Below, piece by piece: positions 5,290 to 30,493 of a DNA stretch of 32,649 nucleotides (positions are counted from its first letter, which is position 1; every line of letters starts with the position of its first letter). Position numbers and translations under genes: made by a program. The stretch lies in the NCBI GenBank assembly GCA_904063045.1, contig CAJFCJ010000127.1:1-32649 (forward strand), read 5' to 3'. This DNA comes from Dimorphilus gyrociliatus. Lineage: Eukaryota > Animalia > Annelida. The notes under the pieces were generated by a model. That model saw only the letters and a program-made list of their open reading frames with translations. It was not told the origin of the DNA and did no database searches.

Positions 5290-6650
5290 TTGAACATAGC
5301 ATATGTAAGAAGGAGGTTGTTAGTTCTGATAGCAAGATCAAAGACAGGCTAACTGGTGTTCAAATTGAATGTTTTATCCGGAAAATTCATGGTTTAACCC
5401 TAACCCTAACCTACCCCTTGTCTCTAACCTTTCTGATTATCTCTAATCCTTAGATGGAATCCCCCTAACAATAAATCAGAAGCTACTTTACTCCTCCTAA
5501 CCATTTTTCAATCCAAAATGTTGCTTTCAAAAATCTCACTTTGGGGACGTTTTTTGTCAGCGCCGTTTAATCCAAGTACTTTCAACTTATTGGAAAAAAT
5601 CTAAAAATTAATTTCTCTGAAAAGCTTTAGCTTTAAGCACATAAAAACTAGTTAGAAGCTTCAGCTGGAAGAAAAGGTAATGCAAAAACTTGCTTCAGAA
5701 GTCCTGCCTTCTTCTCGCTGAAATATTGCTGTGCATATCCCATATACTGCAATAATTTAATAAGATAAAACAAGGAATTTAAATAAAAGCTTATTTGAAT
5801 TTTTCTGTAGATGGCTTGTGGCAATGGAAGACACAATCTTGAATAGGAATATTAGGGTGAACTGAGATAAGAACACTTCATATACCTAATTCATAATCAA
5901 CTACAAATTTGTCAGGTTGAAAACCATTTCTTAATTTGTGAATCCTATGTTGTCAGTAACACATATTGCCTTAAATTCTTATCTATCAGAAATATTTCCT
6001 TTTGTTATGATTGTGTTCATGTTTACTCTTTCTGAAAATGTTTCCTTTTTGTTAAATAATAGCTGGACTTTGAACAATATTATTTCTAACAGAACATCTC
6101 CAGAGGGTTCTCTTGTCACTTTTAGATTTTACATTGAATGCATAGCCATTGTTTGTCAAAGTATCTTTAACTTTTAGCTCCCACCAATGATAATATGAAA
6201 TTCCTCAGAACTTTCCGTATTCTCATCATTTTCAGTTTCATTTTCATGCAATGAATTATCTTCAAAGTATTGTTGACTTCATTTTGACTACAATTTCTTA
6301 ATCATTAATCACATCTGATAATCTTATGAGACAATATCTACAATTCAAACTTTAGCATGAAGAACACTTATCACCTCTCTTTCTGTAATACTAAGCATAG
6401 TTAAATCAATGTATGTTTTTACATAGTAAATGTCACCTTTACAGGTATGATGACAAAGTGAACATATAATTTCTTTAATCCTCAACTTTTCTGCACAATT
6501 TTTGCAAAATATTTTTTAGATTCCAAATTATTAACAAAAAAAGTGTATAATTTAATAGAAACTTATAAACAGACAGACCTTTGATGTATTTAGCATGCAC
6601 ATATTCTTTCTAGTCACTGTATTTCATTTTTCTCTGTCTACCATAAAATC
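5290..6650 (-). pseudogene. Decayed Mutator/MULE transposase with PHD-like and FLYWCH-like zinc fingers
   Basis: Minus-strand motifs in the expected order across stops and frameshifts: PHD-like (YVHAK 6589-6600; FCKNC 6496-6510); FLYWCH-like NGYAF..KRTLWRCSVRN..HEHNH (~6000-6160); QPDKFVVDYE (DYE at 5890-5898); HPNIPIQDCVFH (CxxH; DCVFH at 5824-5838); QAIYRKIQ; ALPFLP; VESTWIK; (W)PVFDLAIRTNN (RTNN at 5316-5327). The first catalytic-D region is missing. Confidence 0.8.
5380..5564 (-). mobile_element. MITE copy B, inserted in the MULE transposase remnant
   Basis: The reverse complement aligns with copy A over ~170 bp and contains taaccctaaccctaacc. Flanks gttttatcc (5371-5379) and gtttaatcc (5565-5573) match 8/9. 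One TIR is partly deleted. Confidence 0.8.
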
Positions 6651-11480: not shown

Positions 11481-11994
11481 TAAAGATTTATATGTCGGAG
11501 AAAGGTTTTTATAACAGTAAATTTTTCATTAATGATAATAATATAGATTTACAGTGCACGATTTTAAACTTGCAGCAAAACGATTAAAATTTTAAGAGTA
11601 TCCCTAATATATTGGTGTATATATAAATATACTATATATAGTATATCATTTGTTAATATTTAGATAGAACAGATTAAAAAGTTGACAGTTATCAAAAATA
11701 TCTCTGAACACGACTGACTGCGATTTTTTTGTTTTAATAAACGGTGTGATTTGTAGTTCAAATGTGTCGCATGACAGTATAAGGTTAATTTAGAATAAAT
11801 TAGAAAACTAATTGGTTGGTTCAGTATTCTGTTTGAGTCATTAAGCTTTAATCTAAGACTTTTATCAAAAGTTAAGCTTTTTAATCTTATCAGAGACAAA
11901 AAGTAATTTATCTGTATTGCTATCTCTCTGTTAACCTGTCTAAGCTTATAAAACTAAACTACAATTACTACATTATATTTTTTGCAACTTTAGA

Positions 11995-12956
11995 ATGAAT
12001 AGTAAAAAGTTAGCATTAATAACTGGTGCTGGTAGTGGCATTGGACGAGCCATTGCACTAAAACTGTCACAGCATAATTACAAATTGTCAATCTTGGGCA
12101 GAAAAGTAAATAAATTAGAGGAAACAGCAACGTTGTGCCAAGAAAACGGTCTTTCTGAAGATGATGTTTGTATTGAAATTAATTAAGAATATATATTTTT
12201 TATGTTCCTAATAGATTCTTATTTCACGATGCGATCTTCTAAAATCTGAAGAAGTTCAGGCTGCTTTTAATGCCACTGTAGACAAATTTAAAAGAATAAA
12301 TTTATTGATTAATAATGCTGGTTTTGGTTATGAAAAATTTTTTCACGAAACGAGCATAGAAGAGTTTGATACAATGTATAAATTACATATGAGAGCACCG
12401 ATACAACTTATGAATTTAGCATATCCGTTATTGAAAGAGACAAAGGGCAATGTTATCAACATTAGCAGCGTAGCATCAGATATATTTCCAGTTAATATAT
12501 ACTAAAGATGTTTCGACATCATTTATTTGAATTATATTTTCTAGGTATCACAGTTAGCGGCCTATTCTCTTGCCAAAGCTGGCATGAATATATTATCAAT
12601 ATTGGCAGCGCAAGGTAAAATAATATTATTTTAAAGAAAATTCCTATTTCGGATGTAACATTGGTATTTTCGCAAAAACAGATTATGGAGAAGATGGCAA
12701 GGTTAGAGTGAATGCCATTCTTCCTGGAGCTGTTAGGACCAGTATATTTTCTACCTCTAAATTTGTAAGTGAGGATGAAAATGACGCAATGTTTGACAGA
12801 GCTGAAAAGAGTATGCTACTGCAAAGAATTGCTGAAAGTAAAGAAATTGCCGAACTAGTATACTTTATTGCCAATGATGAAACAGGTGGAAACATTACAG
12901 GGTCAAAGTTAAATGTAAGTGGTGGAATGAATATAAAGCATAATAATAGCATATAG
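11995..12956 (+). CDS. Classical short-chain dehydrogenase/reductase (FabG-like), 263 aa, 4 exons
   Basis: Exons 11995-12165, 12215-12490, 12545-12614 and 12682-12956 with GT-AG introns of 49/54/67 nt give one open frame. It has TGAGSGIG, NNAG, the catalytic Ser (ISS), YSLAK (YxxxK), RVNAILPG and ITGSKLNVSGG. Confidence 0.95.
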
Positions 12957-13653: not shown

Positions 13654-14810
13654 ATGATAATTGGATTTAGATTGATTTGCAATGGGCTGAAATTCTCTTC
13701 TAGCGCTCTAAAAGATGTGAGTATAAAAAGTTGTAAGATAAGAGATCAAACAGAGTATTTAGCAGAAATGTTTAAGCAATGCTCTGTAGGGGAAACTGTT
13801 AATTTATCTTCTAATGAAGAATTTGGAGACGGGATTAAAAAGATATTAGAAGAACTAGAATTCTCAACCACATTGAAAAGAATTATTGTGAACAATTCCA
13901 TTTTCAATGATAAACAAGCAAATTATCTAGGAGAATTATTGAAAGATTGTTTTTCATTACAAAATGTCAGGCTATGCAAAAAAAATGGGAAGTGGATTAA
14001 AAAGACTTGTAAAGGACTCAATGCCTCTTCAAGAATATTGAACGATATTGATGTAAGACTATGTGATTTTAATGCAGAAAAAGCTAAATGCTTAGACATT
14101 GGAAAATTTTTGAAAGTATCAACTTATGCTATAATATGTCAAAGGGAACAGGATTTAAATTCATATGTCAAGGTCTAAAATTATCTTTATGTTATTTAAA
14201 ATTTCTCAACATTTTTGGCTGTTCATTAAATGATGAACAAATATGGTGGTTAAGTGAATTAACTCAATATTGCTTTTCGTTAGAAACAGCATATTTTAGT
14301 AGTGAAAAAGAGTTGGACATTGGATTTCAAATGTTTTGTAAAGGTAATCCTTTAAGGCTTCTTCATTATTGAAGAAAATTACAATCGATTGATATCATTT
14401 TCTCTCATTAAAATGATCAGGGAGCAGAATGTTTTGGACAAACATTAGAATTCATCATGGAAAGTTATTGATTTAAATTTGTTCTACATTTAGAAAGTCA
14501 TTTCAAAGTGATTTGTAATGGGTTAAAATCTTCGAAGACTTTAAAAGATTTTAAATTATTGGTATGCGATTTGAATGACAAACAAGCAAACCTACTAGCG
14601 GAAATGCTTAAACATTGTTCCTCGTTAGATAGCATATATCTAATTATACGGAAGTTGTAATTTGAAAAATGGATTAAAAATGATTGGCGAATCGCTTAAA
14701 AAATCTCCTTTTTAGAAGTTTAAAACAAATCAATGTCCTTGTACTTGGCTTACCCGAAGAGCAAATAATTAGTTTAAAATCAAGTTTCCACAATTGCCAT
14801 TTAGGATAAT
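13654..14810 (+). pseudogene. Ribonuclease-inhibitor/NLRC3-like LRR repeat gene, frameshifted
   Basis: About six ~56-aa units recur every ~165-170 nt: GF..IC.GL..S...LK....C.LND.QA..L.E.L..C.SL (e.g. GFRLICNGLKFSSSALK, GFKFICQGLK, HFKVICNGLKSSKTLK). They are split across frames by frameshifts and stops. Confidence 0.75.
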
Positions 14811-20900: not shown

Positions 20901-21084
20901 AATTGTTTAAATGTATTTGACAAAAAGAAACAGTAAAAAATATGTAAAACATAGATAAAAGAAAATAAGGTTGAGTATTTACTACTAAAACAATAATGAT
21001 TCTTATTAAAGGTTTGGATTAGTTTAATCTAGCTAATCTGAGATTCAAACAGGGAATAATTTCACGAATTGAAGAATAAAGTTC

Positions 21085-22080
21085 TTATTCATCATGATTT
21101 ACTCTTATAGCTACATTTCCCTTTTTGTGTCCGCTTTCAACGTAAATATGTGCATCAGCCATTTGTTCCAAATTATAAGTTCGATCTATAATTGGAGTGA
21201 CTTTTCCAGACTCTGCTAACTCCTTTATTGTATTTAATTGCTGAGTTGTTGCACTACCAACTGTACAAATGATTTTTTGACTTCCAACGATAGACTGCCA
21301 GAACATCTGCAAAATTTGTTTCAATCCAAATACAGCCATCAGGTAACAAGCTCTAGAATTCAATGAATTTTTACAGGCCGAAAATGATGTTTTACCAACC
21401 GTATCAAAGATAATATCGTATTTTTCCCCATTGGCCGTAAAATCTTCTGTAGTGTAGTCAATCACGTGATCAGCTCCAACAGACTTAATCAATTCAAAAT
21501 TATTTGAACTACAGACTCCAGTAATAATTGCTCCGTAATGTTTAGCCATTTGAACAGTGGCTATTCCAACACTTCCTGATGCTCCATAGACAAGAATCTT
21601 TTGTTCTTTTTCAATCATAGCTTTCTCTAGGAAATGAATTGCCGTGTCCGTTCCAAAGAGAATTGCAACAGATTCATCATAGGAGAGATTTGTTGGTTTT
21701 TTAGCAATACAGCCCTTTTCAGGTAAGCAAATAAATTGAGCATATGCTCCAAGAGCAAATTCGGCCGATCCGTAGACTTGATCTCCCGCTTGAAATAATT
21801 TCACTTTTCTTCCAGCCGTTTCAATTTCACCAGCGAAAAATAGTCCCCACACAGGATTTCTCGGTCTTCTTAAACCAAACATAAGTCTAGTTGGTAGCCA
21901 GAAAGAAGTTGGAATATCTCTAAAACCCCGAAGTTTACAATCCCCTGACGTAGCCATAGTAGAATGTATTTTAATTAAAATTTCATTATCTTTTGGTATT
22001 GGTTTTCGGATGTTTTTCAATTCAAATACATCTTTAGGTTCTCCGTAACCGTTGCAAGTCATACCTTTCATAGTTGCCAT
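21085..22080 (-). CDS. Intronless bacterial-type NAD(P)-dependent alcohol dehydrogenase / quinone-oxidoreductase-like MDR (zinc-independent), 331 aa
   Basis: Uninterrupted ORF MATMKGMTCNGYGEP..KPIPKDNEILIKI..GAYAQFICLPE..KPTNLSY..ILVYGASGSVG..VGADHVIDYTTEDF..YDIIFDTVG..IDRTYNLEQMADAH.YVESGHKKGNV. This is the typical bacterial MDR pattern with the GxxGxxG loop and no obvious Zn-ligand set. Start taken at ATG 22080 (acaATGg); alternative start 22071. Confidence 0.93.
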   Translation of the reverse strand: MATMKGMTCNGYGEPKDVFELKNIRKPIPKDNEILIKIHSTMATSGDCKLRGFRDIPTSFWLPTRLMFGLRRPRNPVWGLFFAGEIETAGRKVKLFQAGDQVYGSAEFALGAYAQFICLPEKGCIAKKPTNLSYDESVAILFGTDTAIHFLEKAMIEKEQKILVYGASGSVGIATVQMAKHYGAIITGVCSSNNFELIKSVGADHVIDYTTEDFTANGEKYDIIFDTVGKTSFSACKNSLNSRACYLMAVFGLKQILQMFWQSIVGSQKIICTVGSATTQQLNTIKELAESGKVTPIIDRTYNLEQMADAHIYVESGHKKGNVAIRVNHDE

Positions 22081-22123
22081 TGTAATCTCTTCCAGAATAT
22101 GGTAAAATAAAAAAAGTACATGG

Positions 22124-22133
22124 CTTTTATATA
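22124..22133 (-). promoter_or_regulatory. TATA box of the MDR gene
   Basis: TATATAAAAG on the minus strand, starting 53 nt upstream of ATG 22080. CCAAT lies at 22201-22205. A candidate ATTAAA poly(A) signal lies at 21028-21023 after the stop. Confidence 0.55.
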
Positions 22134-22449
22134 AAAAGGAAACGAACACAAATGACTCAGGGAAAGTCCACTCTGATTGCACATTACTATTCTCATTAGG
22201 CCAATATATACCCAATTTTTAGACTATTACATGCTGTATAAGATAATTGGCATTTTTTTCGTTATTTTATGTATGATTCAACATCGAATTAATGATAAAC
22301 TTTATATTCTAATAAAAAACTTAACTCACCTGAACTAACTCGCATCGTTTATAGTTTAATTTCTTCGAAAAGAATAGATCAAAAATGTTTCCCATTTAAT
22401 TTGCGATGTCCATTGGCAATAAAGTGAATAACATTTTTCACGTTTTAAC

Positions 22450-24609: not shown

Positions 24610-24792
24610 GGAACCAGTCGAAAACGGCCATAAATAAAATATTTGAAGTTTAGATTTCAAGCTGGGAAATGGTTAGGAGGGAGTATTGACATGTACTTAG
24701 GTTAGGGGGTATTGAAAAAGGTTAGGCAAAAGCAAGGGCTAGGTTAGGGTTAGGGTAAAACAATAGATTTATGGCCGTTTTCTACCACATCC
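24610..24792 (+). mobile_element. MITE copy D (best preserved)
   Basis: Perfect 16-bp inverted arms gaaaacggccataaat (24620-24635) / atttatggccgttttc (24767-24782) within ~26-bp TIRs ending GGA...TCC. Perfect 9-bp TSD acaatttct (24601-24609 and 24793-24801). Core ggttagggttagggt. Confidence 0.9.
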
Positions 24793-25896: not shown

Positions 25897-28800
25897 ATGA
25901 ATATAAAAATTATATACATGCTCTTTTCTTTAGCAAGTTATCACCACTTAAATGGTGAAATAGAAAAAGAATTAAAAGGATATTATTACTTGAGCACTGT
26001 AGAAGAGACGGCTGATTATAGCCTTGGAATTTTAAAAGTTAAATTGAAAGGGAAAAAGGCAGATTTTTACGGCATAATACCAATAGATGATAAAGAATTT
26101 ATTAAATTTATTTGCCATTCTTTCGGTTACGATTCCTTATTTTCTTTTGCAAAAATTGAAAATGGAGAAAGGAAATCAATGTTCATTTCTATAAATATGA
26201 AAAATAAGAAATCGTGCTGTGAATTGTAATTATTTTCAATATAAAATAAATAAGACGCTAATAGCATCTCTATTTTCTATTTTTAGCTACAAAAAGAAAG
26301 TATACTATCCTAAATATCTTCATGAGTATCACATTAAGTGCTTCAAAAAGTCAGCTAGTTGTTAGTTTGTCTAAATTCCATTGTAAATAGACTTATATTC
26401 TCTCTCTCACACACAGATATCTTTGGATTTAGAGAAGAAAAGAATAAGTTTCTATTGTACTTTCGTCTAAATACTCAGACTTTCGGTGTTGTTACTCAAT
26501 CAAAACATAGGAAAATTCTTTGCGGTAGAACAGTGTTTTCACTCCGTAATCACGATAATAAATATTCAAAGTTAATTAAAAACGCTACAAATACCGTAAC
26601 TATTGGACTATCAGATAATGGAAGGTTCCATTTCAGATATATAAAATATAATGATTGTAAGCAAATAGGTTCTTCCTTTGGTTTTTATAGTTGTAAAATT
26701 ATTCATTATAATCGTGATAAAAGTATAAGTCTTGAGGTAATTCTAAATTCTTTTAACCATATTGGAGAAACTTTCTATGAAACCATGCATTGTCCGTTTA
26801 ATTCCACTAATTTTTCTCATTGCCAACTTGTTAAAAAGAGGTTAATTCTCTTATTTTTAAAGCTTTTCTACATATCTATTCCTTCCGTTCGAACAGAGTT
26901 TTCAAAAACAATAAAGGAGTATGGTTCCCATTCTCCATTGAATGTTCTCTGCTGAAAAATGAAGACTGCCTAGGACAATTTGTTTTAAAAATCTATAACA
27001 GTTGCTATTATGTTTTTAAATCTAAGGAGAAAGTCTTTACTTTACCTGAATTGGAGGATGAATGTTTAAAAAGGAATTTGACTATACTGGACTATCAATC
27101 GATAAATTGGTATTTTGTCATGACTTATCTCTCCTATTTACAAATACCACTTTCGCTTTATGATCAGTATAGTATTCGTTTGCACTACAGTAGTAAAAAT
27201 CTATGTAAGTTGATGGAGTTTTGTATCGGTTTCCCTAAGATAAATTCTCTTTAAACAGAAACGAATAACTAATGAACAGAATATAAGTCTCTACGCCACA
27301 AGCAGTGGAAGAACACTTACACTCCCAATTTCTTCACCGTTTGTAAGTAACCGATGTTGTTCTCATGTTTCAAAACGGAATATATCACAGTTTTCTCTTG
27401 ACTGAAGGAAATTTCAGTGAATTATAATAATCATTTGTATTATCAAAAAGATATGAGAGAAAAGAAATTCCTTTACACATATTTTTGTCTATCTAACGAA
27501 CTCGTTAATGTATGATGTTAGTTTTCACTTTTCGATTAAAATATATAAGTCAAATAATTTCAAGGTCAATAAAGATTCTGTTCGAACTAAAGTCAATTTT
27601 TGCGAAGAGTTCTTTGGCCCAATTTTCTATTGTCAAAAATCAATAAGTTTGCTTTTTTTTGTTTGAATCAATAGAGATATATTCTCGTATTGAAATCTCA
27701 TAGAGAACGTGATAGAATCGTTAGGAATACTTTCAATATCGATTGCTAATCACTCAACTTATCTGGATAACTGTTATTCTTGTTCCCGATCTAATATATT
27801 GATTAATAAAGCTTATTTATGCGATGGTATTGCTGATTGTCCTTTGGGAGAGGATGAATACAATTGTAGTAGGTACTTTACGATGTTATTCAAATGTAAC
27901 AAAAAAGCGCAATACATAAGCATTTTCCTGATCTGCAATCATGTCAAAGATTGTCTAGACGGATCTGATGAAACGCTTTGCGGTTAATACAGTTATATTC
28001 AATTTTTTTTACTCTACTTACCAGATTTCTTAAATGAGCAGAATATTCAAAATGTGAATTTGGAGAACAGTAAGAAAAAGAAGAAAACAATTCCCACTGA
28101 TTTTTCCTCTTTTATATATTTTAGACAATGCAAGAATAATCAATGTGTTAAAACAGATCAATTATGTAATAATGAAAGAAATTGCATTGACAGTAGTGAC
28201 GAAATTTGCTTTCCTAGTAAGATGACCTTCTGGTCCCTTAAAATTCTTGATGGGTAAAAAAATTTTTTAGACTGTAGAAAAGAGTTTCAAATTCTATGCG
28301 ATGCAAACTGTATACCGAACCACACTAAATATGATAAGAAAAGAGATTGTTTAATCGATAACGAAGAAAGGGAGCTAGACTCACGCAATCGTTACCATTA
28401 TAGGACATCAACCGATTGTTTCTTTCTTACCTCCTCTATGGGCCAACCAATTACCGATCTTAATCTAGCGACAGCCGGTTGTTCAAGAAAATCCTGCCCG
28501 ATTGGGCAATATCTTTGTCATCAAGATAAATATTGTATATCTGTTGAATTAGTATGCGATGGTGTCAATCATTGCTTTTTAGGAGATGATGAGGACAATT
28601 GTGGTTCGTAATTTTTGTTTTTGGGAAAAAATCAATTAACTATTGTCAATTTTACAGACAAATTCCATCCCCAAGGATATTTTAAATGTAGAAATGAACG
28701 CAAATTCCTAACCCCACAAAAAATTTGCGACGAAAACATTGAATGTATTCACGGAAGTGATGAAATACTATGCATTATTCCTAAAATCTCATTAAAAAAC

Positions 28801-30493
28801 TGCCAACAAATACCTTCTTTTCACCTCGACTGTAATTTTCAGAATTCTATTCAAACATTTCAAGAAATTGGGCCAAATTCTCTCATTTCGAACGAATATT
28901 TAAGAGTAGCTTCCTTCAAGGGATCTCTACCTTACAAACTAATTTTGAATCATTCCTATCACCTGGCATCTTTATCTTTTGAAGATTTTTCTCATATTTC
29001 CTCAAGAACCAGTGGATTCTTCTTCCCAAATCTAATATATCTATCATTAAACAATTGTTCAGTAGATGATAATTCTAATATTCTCTATAGAAAAATGAGA
29101 AAATTGCAAAATCTTATCCTCAGATACAATCCAATAAAATCTTTATCATTCTTGGCAAATTTCCAAAGTGATAATTTGATAAAATTGGATGTTTCCTATA
29201 CGAAGTTAAATGCAATTACTAGAAACAGTTTTCAGTCAAATTTCAACTTGGAAAGCCTGGCAATGACAGAATGCAAAATTGAATTTATTGAGGAAAATTC
29301 TTTTCTTCCCCTGAAGAAATTGCGTAATTTGCTTGCTGGCGAAAGGGAGCTGCCAGTTGAAGATTTGTACCATACGGTTCAACATTTAGAATCCATGGAA
29401 ATGGTTGAAGGCAATAACAGTTTTATATTCTGTTGTCTCTTCTGGAAATTTATCAACAAGCGTATTGAGTGTAAGGCTACAAGGAAAATTTTCTGGTCAT
29501 GTGATCGCTTAATAAGTACCAACTATCATCGAGTTATGTTCTGGACTATTGGACTTTTAGGAGCATTGGCAAATTTCGTATCAATTGCTCTCAGTGCGAC
29601 GTCAAAAGGCAGTTCCAGATATTTTCGTATACTTTTAAGTATAAGCGACCTTGCACTGTCATTTTACGCGTTGATAATAGCAGTTTATGATGTCAATTCG
29701 TCAAATGATTATTTAAAATTTTCAGTTGTATGGAAAAACAGCATTGCGTGCGAATATCTTGGAACTCTTGTGACTTTTTCAACATTAGTATCATCTTTCT
29801 GTTTGCTTTTGATTACTGCTGAAAGACACCAGGCTGTTACTAATCCTATGATAAAATCTATATTTGCTGTTTATCCTAAAACAATATTGACCTTTATGTT
29901 TTGTTTTCTTTTATTTTTGTCATTTACCAGACATATAATGTATAAGATAAGTCAACATACCGTATATAAGCAGTACTCTATGTGTTTTTCAAACGCTTTA
30001 GTTATGTTCTTTTTAGTATGAATACAACTCAACACCGTTGTGTTTTCATACATTTTTGAAAAGTAATGAAAATAGCTGGATTTTTTCATTTACAATCTTT
30101 GCTATAATTGTACCAATTTTCAATATTTCGAATTGCTTTTTGTGTTTTCGCATACTATTTATTGTAATAAATTCATTTAGATCATTTCATAATTCTTCTG
30201 AAAAGCAAAAAAAGGGAAAGAGTATTAAAATACACTATATTTTGTTTGCTATTACCTCCTGTTTCATTTGGTTTCCTATTTCTGGTATAGGTTTCTTTAT
30301 AATAAATGATAATTCAATGAAAAATGTTGAGAATTTAGAATTAGTTGTTACATGTTTAATACTCTTAGAAACAATCATTAATCCAGTTTTCATCTCAATT
30401 AAGGAAATTAAACAGAGAATTGAATATTTAGAAAAATTTTTCGTTCAAAAAAGGCTTCTTAAATATAAACTTTCTCAATTTATAGTGCTTTAA
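25897..30493 (+). CDS. GRL101-like LDLa/LRR class A GPCR (type C2 LGR) with N-terminal SRCR-like and C-type-lectin-like regions, ~1307 aa
   Basis: Exons 25897-26225, 26287-26360, 26417-26840, 26897-27228, 27280-27342, 27418-27509, 27550-27646, 27704-27982, 28042-28069, 28125-28216, 28271-28603, 28658-29961 and 30017-30493 total 3924 nt in frame. At least 5 clear LDLa repeats (e.g. LCDGIADCPLGEDEYNC), LRRs (LQNLILRYNPI, LIKLDVSYTKL) and seven TM helices. The junctions between 27193 and 27550 are the least certain. Confidence 0.88.

Follow-up and report, generated by a model that had tools for sequence, protein, structure and literature searches.

Transfers of metabolic genes from bacteria to animals have been documented in bdelloid rotifers, nematodes, and arthropods, and well-supported cases are still few. 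Here, we describe an intronless gene for a zinc-free medium-chain dehydrogenase/reductase (MDR) of the annelid Dimorphilus gyrociliatus, which is located on contig CAJFCJ010000127.1 (in the following C127) of assembly GCA_904063045.1. The window that was analyzed is this entire contig (32,649 bp; AT-rich, 23–36 % GC), and genome searches covered the D. gyrociliatus assembly G000 (77.9 Mb, 349 contigs). We consider it quite probable that the gene was acquired horizontally from bacteria and is now a resident nuclear gene of the worm. As in the known bacterium-to-animal transfers, it is intronless, has its nearest relatives among bacteria, shows a host-like composition and a predicted eukaryotic promoter, and was later duplicated; that it constitutes a new example of such transfer plus duplication, and not a new kind of system, is well supported. 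Going by the sequences, an old transfer from a bacterium to dinophilids that has since grown into a small gene family is most likely. In the full-text literature, no report of this gene, of horizontal gene transfer (HGT) in D. gyrociliatus, or of bacterium-to-annelid transfer was found, and the D. gyrociliatus genome paper contains no discussion of HGT into the worm (PMC7854359).

The closest counterpart is a bacterial MDR family whose members are named ‘NAD(P)-dependent alcohol dehydrogenase’ or ‘NADPH:quinone reductase-like Zn-dependent oxidoreductase’ (P0004, P0009, P0015, P0026, P0040). We know of no member with a tested function. These proteins are 50–56 % identical to the window protein over the full length, comprise 320–335 aa, and have the same succession of ADH_N, ADH_zinc_N, and ADH_zinc_N_2 domains. 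An alignment of 62 bacterial and metagenomic homologues has 60 columns with a conservation of 90 % or more; the window protein retains 53 of them and its paralogues 56. Unlike the bacterial family, the animal copies form a clade of their own with a long stem, have a putative TATA promoter and AT-rich codons, and, in two copies, begin with an additional Met-Ala-Thr (MAT) start. The coding sequence in the window is arranged as follows:

21085 to 22080, minus strand: intronless coding sequence of the zinc-free MDR oxidoreductase, 331 codons plus TAA (21087 to 21085), with the first ATG at 22080.
22069 to 22071, minus strand: internal ATG (M4); query residue 4 pairs with residue 1 of most matches, and bacterial homologues begin with MK at this point.

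According to the listing of open reading frames, the minus-strand frame is open from stop to stop over positions 22215 to 21085. By our own arithmetic, 376 open codons would occur by chance with a probability of about 1e-14, as about 8 % stop codons are expected in DNA of 28–30 % GC. A preliminary description of this DNA had pointed to a clean, intronless frame of 331 codons, which was borne out by the ATG at 22080, the stop codon at 21085–21087, and MDR domains from end to end. Matches to Pfam ADH_N (27.4 bits), ADH_zinc_N (51.3 bits), and ADH_zinc_N_2 (89.5 bits) span the full product without a break and all exceed their cut-offs; every NCBIfam match lies far under the cut-off of its family. 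The nucleotide-binding motif GASGSVG (residues 166–172) fits the glycine-rich (A/G)xxGxxG pattern, with G166 and G172 being invariant and A167 and G169 nearly so among 66 aligned sequences. Direct reading of the translation furthermore revealed FAGE at the position of GHE in zinc alcohol dehydrogenases (ADHs) and no Cys cluster at residues ~90–115. As FAGE replaces GHE and the four-Cys structural-zinc loop is absent, the enzyme is assigned to the zinc-free MDRs and is, judged from its sequence, a complete member of their quinone-oxidoreductase-like branch.

The strongest indication of a foreign origin comes from the distribution of relatives. Animals contribute only three of the 120 best matches from a collection of 5.8 billion clustered proteins, namely P0001 (68 % identity), P0002 (67 %, from Logan assemblies), and P0003 (65 %). 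The other 117 share 50–56 % identity, and all named ones are bacterial or metagenomic; further animals, other eukaryotes, or viruses do not occur among these 120 matches, nor does any further eukaryote occur in the contexts and names checked. P0004, the nearest bacterial match, is flanked by restriction-modification genes, a KDO transferase gene, and DsbD/AhpC genes, and the homologues P0159 and P0290, for which N-terminal extensions had made a eukaryotic origin conceivable, also reside in bacterial operon-like contexts. A library clustered at 50 % contains 2,077 representatives below 1e-30, the best of which is a fragment of another D. gyrociliatus copy (P0125, DgyrCDS14785); the names recovered for homologues in this library are bacterial, and the closest protein-atlas clusters consist to 93–100 % of Bacteria. 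A single-protein locus search of prokaryote genomes yielded four loci with 21–44 % identity and was of no help in naming the donor.

The native MDRs of the worm are much more distant from the query, i. e., a gene on contig C15 with 33 % identity (the orthologue of human VAT-1, E 1e-75) and one on C7 with 27 % (the TP53I3/PIG3 orthologue, E 9e-82), and the best animal structure match is RTN4IP1 (E 1e-24). The query is thus not an orthologue of RTN4IP1, zeta-crystallin, VAT-1, or PIG3; outside the recipient lineage, bacteria supply its nearest relatives, with no other animal protein closer than these. The preliminary description had called the protein bacterial-type as opposed to RTN4IP1 or zeta-crystallin, which holds with respect to orthology but not to the type of enzyme, as the closest characterized proteins are the eukaryotic ceQORH, FaEO, and RTN4IP1 at ~25 % identity.

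Trees of 93, 65, and 32 rows were computed with IQ-TREE (LG+C20 PMSF, quick search) and, in addition, with FastTree. In all cases, the animal sequences included (four or five) group together in a single clade (SH-aLRT 100 or SH-like 1.0) on a stem of 0.4–0.55 substitutions per site. With distant MDRs or the most distant matches as outgroup, this clade is placed several nodes deep among bacterial rows, with enclosing supports of 80–93, and the native PIG3 orthologue is found far from it on a branch of 3.3 substitutions per site. A similarity search and a maximum-likelihood phylogeny had both been suggested as checks; by the former, the nearest non-annelid relatives are bacterial, and in the trees the protein does not fall among animal orthologues.

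The gene is not alone in the genome. A genome search combined with pairwise comparison identified at least three intact and at least four decayed copies, making up seven loci on seven contigs:

C127, 21088 to 22080: intact intronless copy (the window gene).
C48, 183 to 1175: intact intronless copy.
C1, 3606072 to 3607055: intact intronless copy.
C76: frameshifted copy that adjoins a run of N; public 245-aa protein DgyrCDS14785 (P0125).
C234, C148, and C196: stop-bearing fragments.

The annotated D. gyrociliatus proteins P0001 and P0003 correspond to the C48 and C1 copies, respectively, at 100 % identity each; in public records, the paralogues are unnamed or termed ‘enoyl reductase domain’ proteins. 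The window protein is 68 % identical to P0001 and 65 % identical to P0003, and the intact copies diverge by 32–35 % at the protein level. The C1 copy has leucine-rich repeat (LRR) genes beside it and lies on a 3.6-Mb scaffold, 2 kb short of its end. The decayed copies arose from the C48 type in recent times (74–93 % nucleotide identity); the run of N upstream of the frameshifted C76 copy measures ~2.3 kb and directly precedes it (L028:4700–6950). Among the intact copies, the ratio of nonsynonymous to synonymous divergence (dN/dS) amounts to 0.08–0.17 at saturated dS (>1.5), which points to old duplications and to purifying selection on the proteins ever since. This comparison with relatives had likewise been proposed beforehand, and its outcome is that of a gene family under constraint.

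Expression signals were evaluated for the window gene and its intact paralogues. The following elements are found around the coding sequence:

22077 to 22083, minus strand: sequence around the start codon, ACAATGG, with A at -3 and G at +4; in the C48 copy, it reads GCAATGG and continues with the same Ala-Thr codons.
22124 to 22133, minus strand: predicted TATA box TATATAAAAG, 53 nt upstream of the ATG.
22153 to 22159, minus strand: TGAGTCA (AP-1/antioxidant-response-element-like), a lead only, ~20 nt upstream of the TATA box; its AGTCA part aligns with the C48 promoter.
21023 to 21028, minus strand: candidate poly(A) signal ATTAAA, 57 nt past the stop codon.

The residues M-A-T precede the bacterial-type M-K start, and this extension is common to the C127 and C48 copies. 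The Kozak-like acaATGg start described previously, which adds MAT before the MK start, was confirmed by the alignment of residue 4 with residue 1 of the homologues. Upstream of the MK start, TATATAAAA is present at a distance of 62 nt in C127, 58 nt in C48, and 52–60 nt in C1, a 9-mer with a chance of 0.0023 per 25-nt window in C127 DNA. The box at 53 nt upstream of the ATG, which had also been noted, accordingly withstood closer inspection, its position being kept in all three intact paralogues. The C127 and C48 promoters additionally have in common AGTCA before the box, GC right after it, and the start context (A/G)CAATGGCAAC. As the copies descend from one another, the three TATA boxes do not represent independent events; survival of the box while the remaining flanks diverged nevertheless argues for a promoter function. 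In D. gyrociliatus, many promoters are reported to carry a TATA box at position -30 relative to the start mapped by cap analysis of gene expression (CAGE), and trans-splicing is reported to be absent (PMC7854359). By this rule, transcription is predicted to start at ~22100, leaving a 5' untranslated region of ~20 nt. Besides the conserved TATA box, the existence of public gene models for the paralogues gives an indirect pointer to expression.

The 3' signal fared differently. A[AT]TAAA occurs once per ~280 strand-nt in the window, corresponding to a ~35 % chance of finding one within 120 nt; the ATTAAA is thus not above chance, its position is not conserved among the copies, and it carries no weight as the expression signal for which it had been taken. 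The TGAGTCA motif is no more frequent in the window than by chance (4 copies vs 3.9 expected) and has the status of a lead as far as regulation is concerned. Such a site would suit a stress-inducible detoxification gene.

The surroundings of the gene were inspected for their origin, and the following features were recorded on C127:

11944 to 12502, plus strand: short-chain dehydrogenase/reductase (SDR) gene in at least two open pieces (11944–12183 and 12215–12502), with TGAGSGIG and NNAG motifs in separate frames; identified by motifs only.
13654 to 14372, plus strand: ribonuclease-inhibitor (RNI)-type LRR open frames with ‘C.SL..IDLS.N’ repeats; such frames also adjoin the C1 paralogue (L027:14–4901).
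27709 to 30493, plus strand: multi-exon receptor gene (LGR-like) combining low-density lipoprotein receptor class A, LRR, and seven-transmembrane domains (LDLa-LRR-7TM; Pfam Ldl_recept_a, LRR_8, and 7tm_1).
2640 to 2851, 5383 to 5574, 14423 to 14620, and 24700 to 24791: short interspersed repeats with 70–85 % identity to other contigs (C48, C148).

The MDR gene is the sole long uninterrupted coding frame on the contig. Its neighbors, the SDR and the LDLa-LRR-7TM genes, are each split into several open pieces, in line with the earlier remark that the other genes have introns, and the presence of these two genes identifies C127 as animal DNA. The interspersed repeats common to C48 and C148 tie the small contig to the remaining assembly. 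GC content is 36 % in the gene and 28–30 % in the flanks, without a break in composition. At third codon positions (GC3), a comparison that had been recommended in the preliminary description, the gene reaches 0.25 and its paralogues 0.23–0.39 vs 0.30 in a host exon on C127, i. e., a host-like value. Together with the paralogue on the 3.6-Mb scaffold, the intron-bearing genes on the contig and the GC3 of the window copy thus link the gene to the host in both position and composition. No direct or inverted repeats of note flank the gene in the window. A mobile element as the carrier was rejected, as flanks are common only to the recent pseudogene duplicates. The LDLa-LRR-7TM family is very large genome-wide, with at least 104 scored matches among 485 candidates, many of them on small contigs. 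The MDR copies on C127, C148, and C76 share their contig with a gene of this family, and the C76 copy is also adjoined by a frame with a NACHT-like P-loop and LRRs.

A second animal species carries an orthologue-like gene as well. P0002 is encoded on contigs from four independent sequencing-run assemblies (SRR23372216, SRR23372228, SRR23372229, and SRR23372231), and as it is only 60–70 % identical to each D. gyrociliatus copy, it must stem from another organism. The occurrence is therefore not confined to one locus or one species but covers seven loci in G000 and four run assemblies of the second organism, and no intron is present in any MDR copy of either species. On the longest P0002 contig (L011, Logan SRR23372229; 10.4 kb, 25.7 % GC), an LDLa-LRR-7TM gene lies upstream of the MDR gene, which indicates animal DNA of a related kind. 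Synteny was rejected as evidence of orthology, as the receptor family has at least 104 copies, the neighbors are 35–45 % identical, and their orientation differs. The MDR gene of the second species is accompanied by one further gene:

L011, 8213 to 9442, minus strand: intronless tryptophan synthase beta gene (trpB), 409 aa (TIGR00263, 533 bits), 324 nt from the MDR gene and convergent to it.

The encoded TrpB is 75–77 % identical to that of Arcobacteraceae; the 909 nt beyond the gene are AT-rich and contain no genes. The MDR-trpB junction recurs in the four run assemblies, and a tryptophan synthase gene is absent from the D. gyrociliatus assembly G000. Two origins are conceivable for the L011 trpB, namely a further transfer of younger date or a chimera with an AT-rich epibiont that arose recurrently. 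It is a tentative thought, at present rather doubtful, that dinophilid-type worms possess several metabolic genes captured from bacteria, which lie in a small cluster.

With respect to function, an AlphaFold2 model of the product (pLDDT 96.3, pTM 0.93) gave Arabidopsis ceQORH (template-modeling (TM) score 0.88) and Coxiella quinone oxidoreductase (QOR; 0.87) as the best fold matches, followed by FaEO and human RTN4IP1, all at 23–27 % identity; a sequence search of solved structures ranked the same proteins first (E 1e-24 to 5e-28). Both ceQORH, the quinone-oxidoreductase homologue of the chloroplast envelope and a gamma-ketol reductase (PDB 5a3j), and the strawberry enone oxidoreductase FaEO (PDB 4ida; TM 0.88 and 0.79, respectively) are zinc-free MDRs that have the ...LGAD.V(I/L)DY segment in common with the window protein. 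At only 26–27 % identity, they may serve as models of the chemistry but not as orthologues. The animal proteins RTN4IP1 (PDB 2vn8), VAT-1, TP53I3/PIG3, and zeta-crystallin belong to the same superfamily and fold at 18–24 % identity, and the NADPH-binding RTN4IP1 also features the ...VCS...LGAD.VIDY segment. The stretch past the second Rossmann strand (...TGVCSS...IKSVGADHVIDY) aligns with RTN4IP1 and ceQORH, both of which were solved with NADP(H). In the model, the protein begins right at the first beta-strand, with no mitochondrial presequence. By analogy, the product is probably a cytosolic NADPH-dependent reductase of quinones or of the C=C bond of enones. As an enzyme of the QOR/ceQORH type, it would most likely act either on alpha,beta-unsaturated carbonyls (enones, gamma-ketols), reducing their C=C bond, or on quinones, and this might provide a detoxification-type activity to a worm living on bacterial films.

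The points that weigh against the proposed transfer concern the donor, the trees, the contig, and the window copy itself. The named near matches are spread over Patescibacteria, Thermodesulfobacteriota, Chloroflexota (including Dehalococcoidia), Aminicenantes, Deltaproteobacteria, and others, so that no donor lineage is singled out, and the branch supports of the trees are of the SH type only. If the gene had been inherited vertically since ancient times, an old eukaryotic MDR subfamily would have been retained in dinophilids, and other animals would have lost it or changed it past recognition. A corresponding topology, in which all bacterial rows are grouped into a single clade and the animal clade branches off outside it beside the outgroups, was subjected to the approximately unbiased (AU) test. 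Under C20 with 22 rows, it was rejected, though marginally (p 0.038), whereas under LG+G4 with 31 rows (p 0.56) the constrained tree scores slightly better, which allows for an annelid clade outside all sampled bacterial rows. Long-branch attraction of the animal stem to the very long outgroups could have caused the latter result. Rooted nesting within bacteria is accordingly not firm, being model-dependent and marginally supported by the alignments at hand. The closest solved structures (ceQORH, FaEO, RTN4IP1) are eukaryotic as well. Nonetheless, we regard vertical inheritance as improbable, given that no other animal or eukaryote appears in the 120 best matches or in the contexts and names checked, that identity is 50–56 % to bacteria vs ~25 % to the eukaryotic enzymes, that the MDR copies of both species are intronless next to intron-bearing genes, and that the C20 trees place the clade among bacteria. 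The case for transfer rests mainly on distribution and similarity, i. e., thousands of bacterial members across phyla vs one animal lineage, and is supported, if not settled, by the tree. A detour via another eukaryote, a mobile element, or a virus that had taken up the gene from bacteria would be compatible with a multi-copy family in regions that evolve fast and abound in repeats and expanded gene families, and with the long stem branch (0.4–0.55). Such an indirect route has a small probability in our estimation, as the copies lack common flanks, terminal repeats, or transposon genes (the recent pseudogene duplicates excepted) and no eukaryotic or viral intermediate is found among the 120 best matches.

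An assembly artefact, that is, a bacterial contaminant joined to worm DNA or a chimeric contig, might be suspected from the small size (32.6 kb) and unplaced status of the window contig and from the fact that the genome authors had to remove bacterial contigs (PMC7854359). It is extremely unlikely, since composition is continuous from the gene into the flanks and the contig is devoid of bacterial neighbors. The seven loci are moreover at different stages of decay, an intact copy resides on the 3.6-Mb scaffold beside LRR genes, and four run assemblies of another organism place the gene beside an animal receptor gene; finally, paralogues that are 65–68 % identical with saturated dS show a divergence that contamination cannot yield. 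The transferred gene might, however, be active elsewhere than in the window, namely as the C48 and/or C1 copy only, in which case C127 would bear a silent duplicate that is heading for decay. In favor of a silent copy, a look-up of the exact window protein, with either start, gave no entry in the protein collection, while annotated proteins exist for the C48, C1, and broken C76 copies; the window protein deviates at seven highly conserved columns vs four in the paralogues, and the family does generate pseudogenes. On the other hand, the copy has kept an open frame of 331 codons within AT-rich DNA, its dN/dS amounts to 0.10–0.12 against each paralogue, its terminal branch is not lengthened (0.25 vs 0.29–0.40 in the others), and it agrees with C48 in TATA box and start context, which makes silence of this copy unlikely, albeit conceivable.

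Taken together, a horizontally acquired gene that has become part of the worm genome remains the preferred interpretation. A bacterial MDR gene would have entered the germ line of a common ancestor of D. gyrociliatus and a second AT-rich animal, drifted to host composition, and gained a TATA-box promoter for RNA polymerase II. One sublineage would then have obtained the three-residue N-terminal extension with its Kozak-type start. Repeated duplication may have followed, with three copies (C127, C48, and C1) staying intact under purifying selection and at least four decaying. The domesticated bacterial gene envisaged in the preliminary description is therefore upheld by bacterial relatives, location in host DNA, GC3, purifying selection, and the TATA box; the notion of a single gene is not, in view of three intact and four decayed copies and a second species.

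The locus remains one more instance of a known phenomenon, and its enzyme class is ordinary. The case does, however, bring together an old transfer, its expansion by duplication to three intact copies and four decayed ones, a promoter element that has been conserved from copy to copy, and a second carrier species. If the MDR-trpB junction is real, an animal lineage would have gained a reductase for detoxification as well as an enzyme for the synthesis of tryptophan from indole and serine, and the MDR family would mark a region prone to the uptake of foreign DNA. As D. gyrociliatus is kept in laboratory culture and has a compact genome for which CAGE, ATAC-seq (assay for transposase-accessible chromatin), and RNA-seq data already exist, the path from a bacterial gene to an expressed animal gene is directly testable in this worm.

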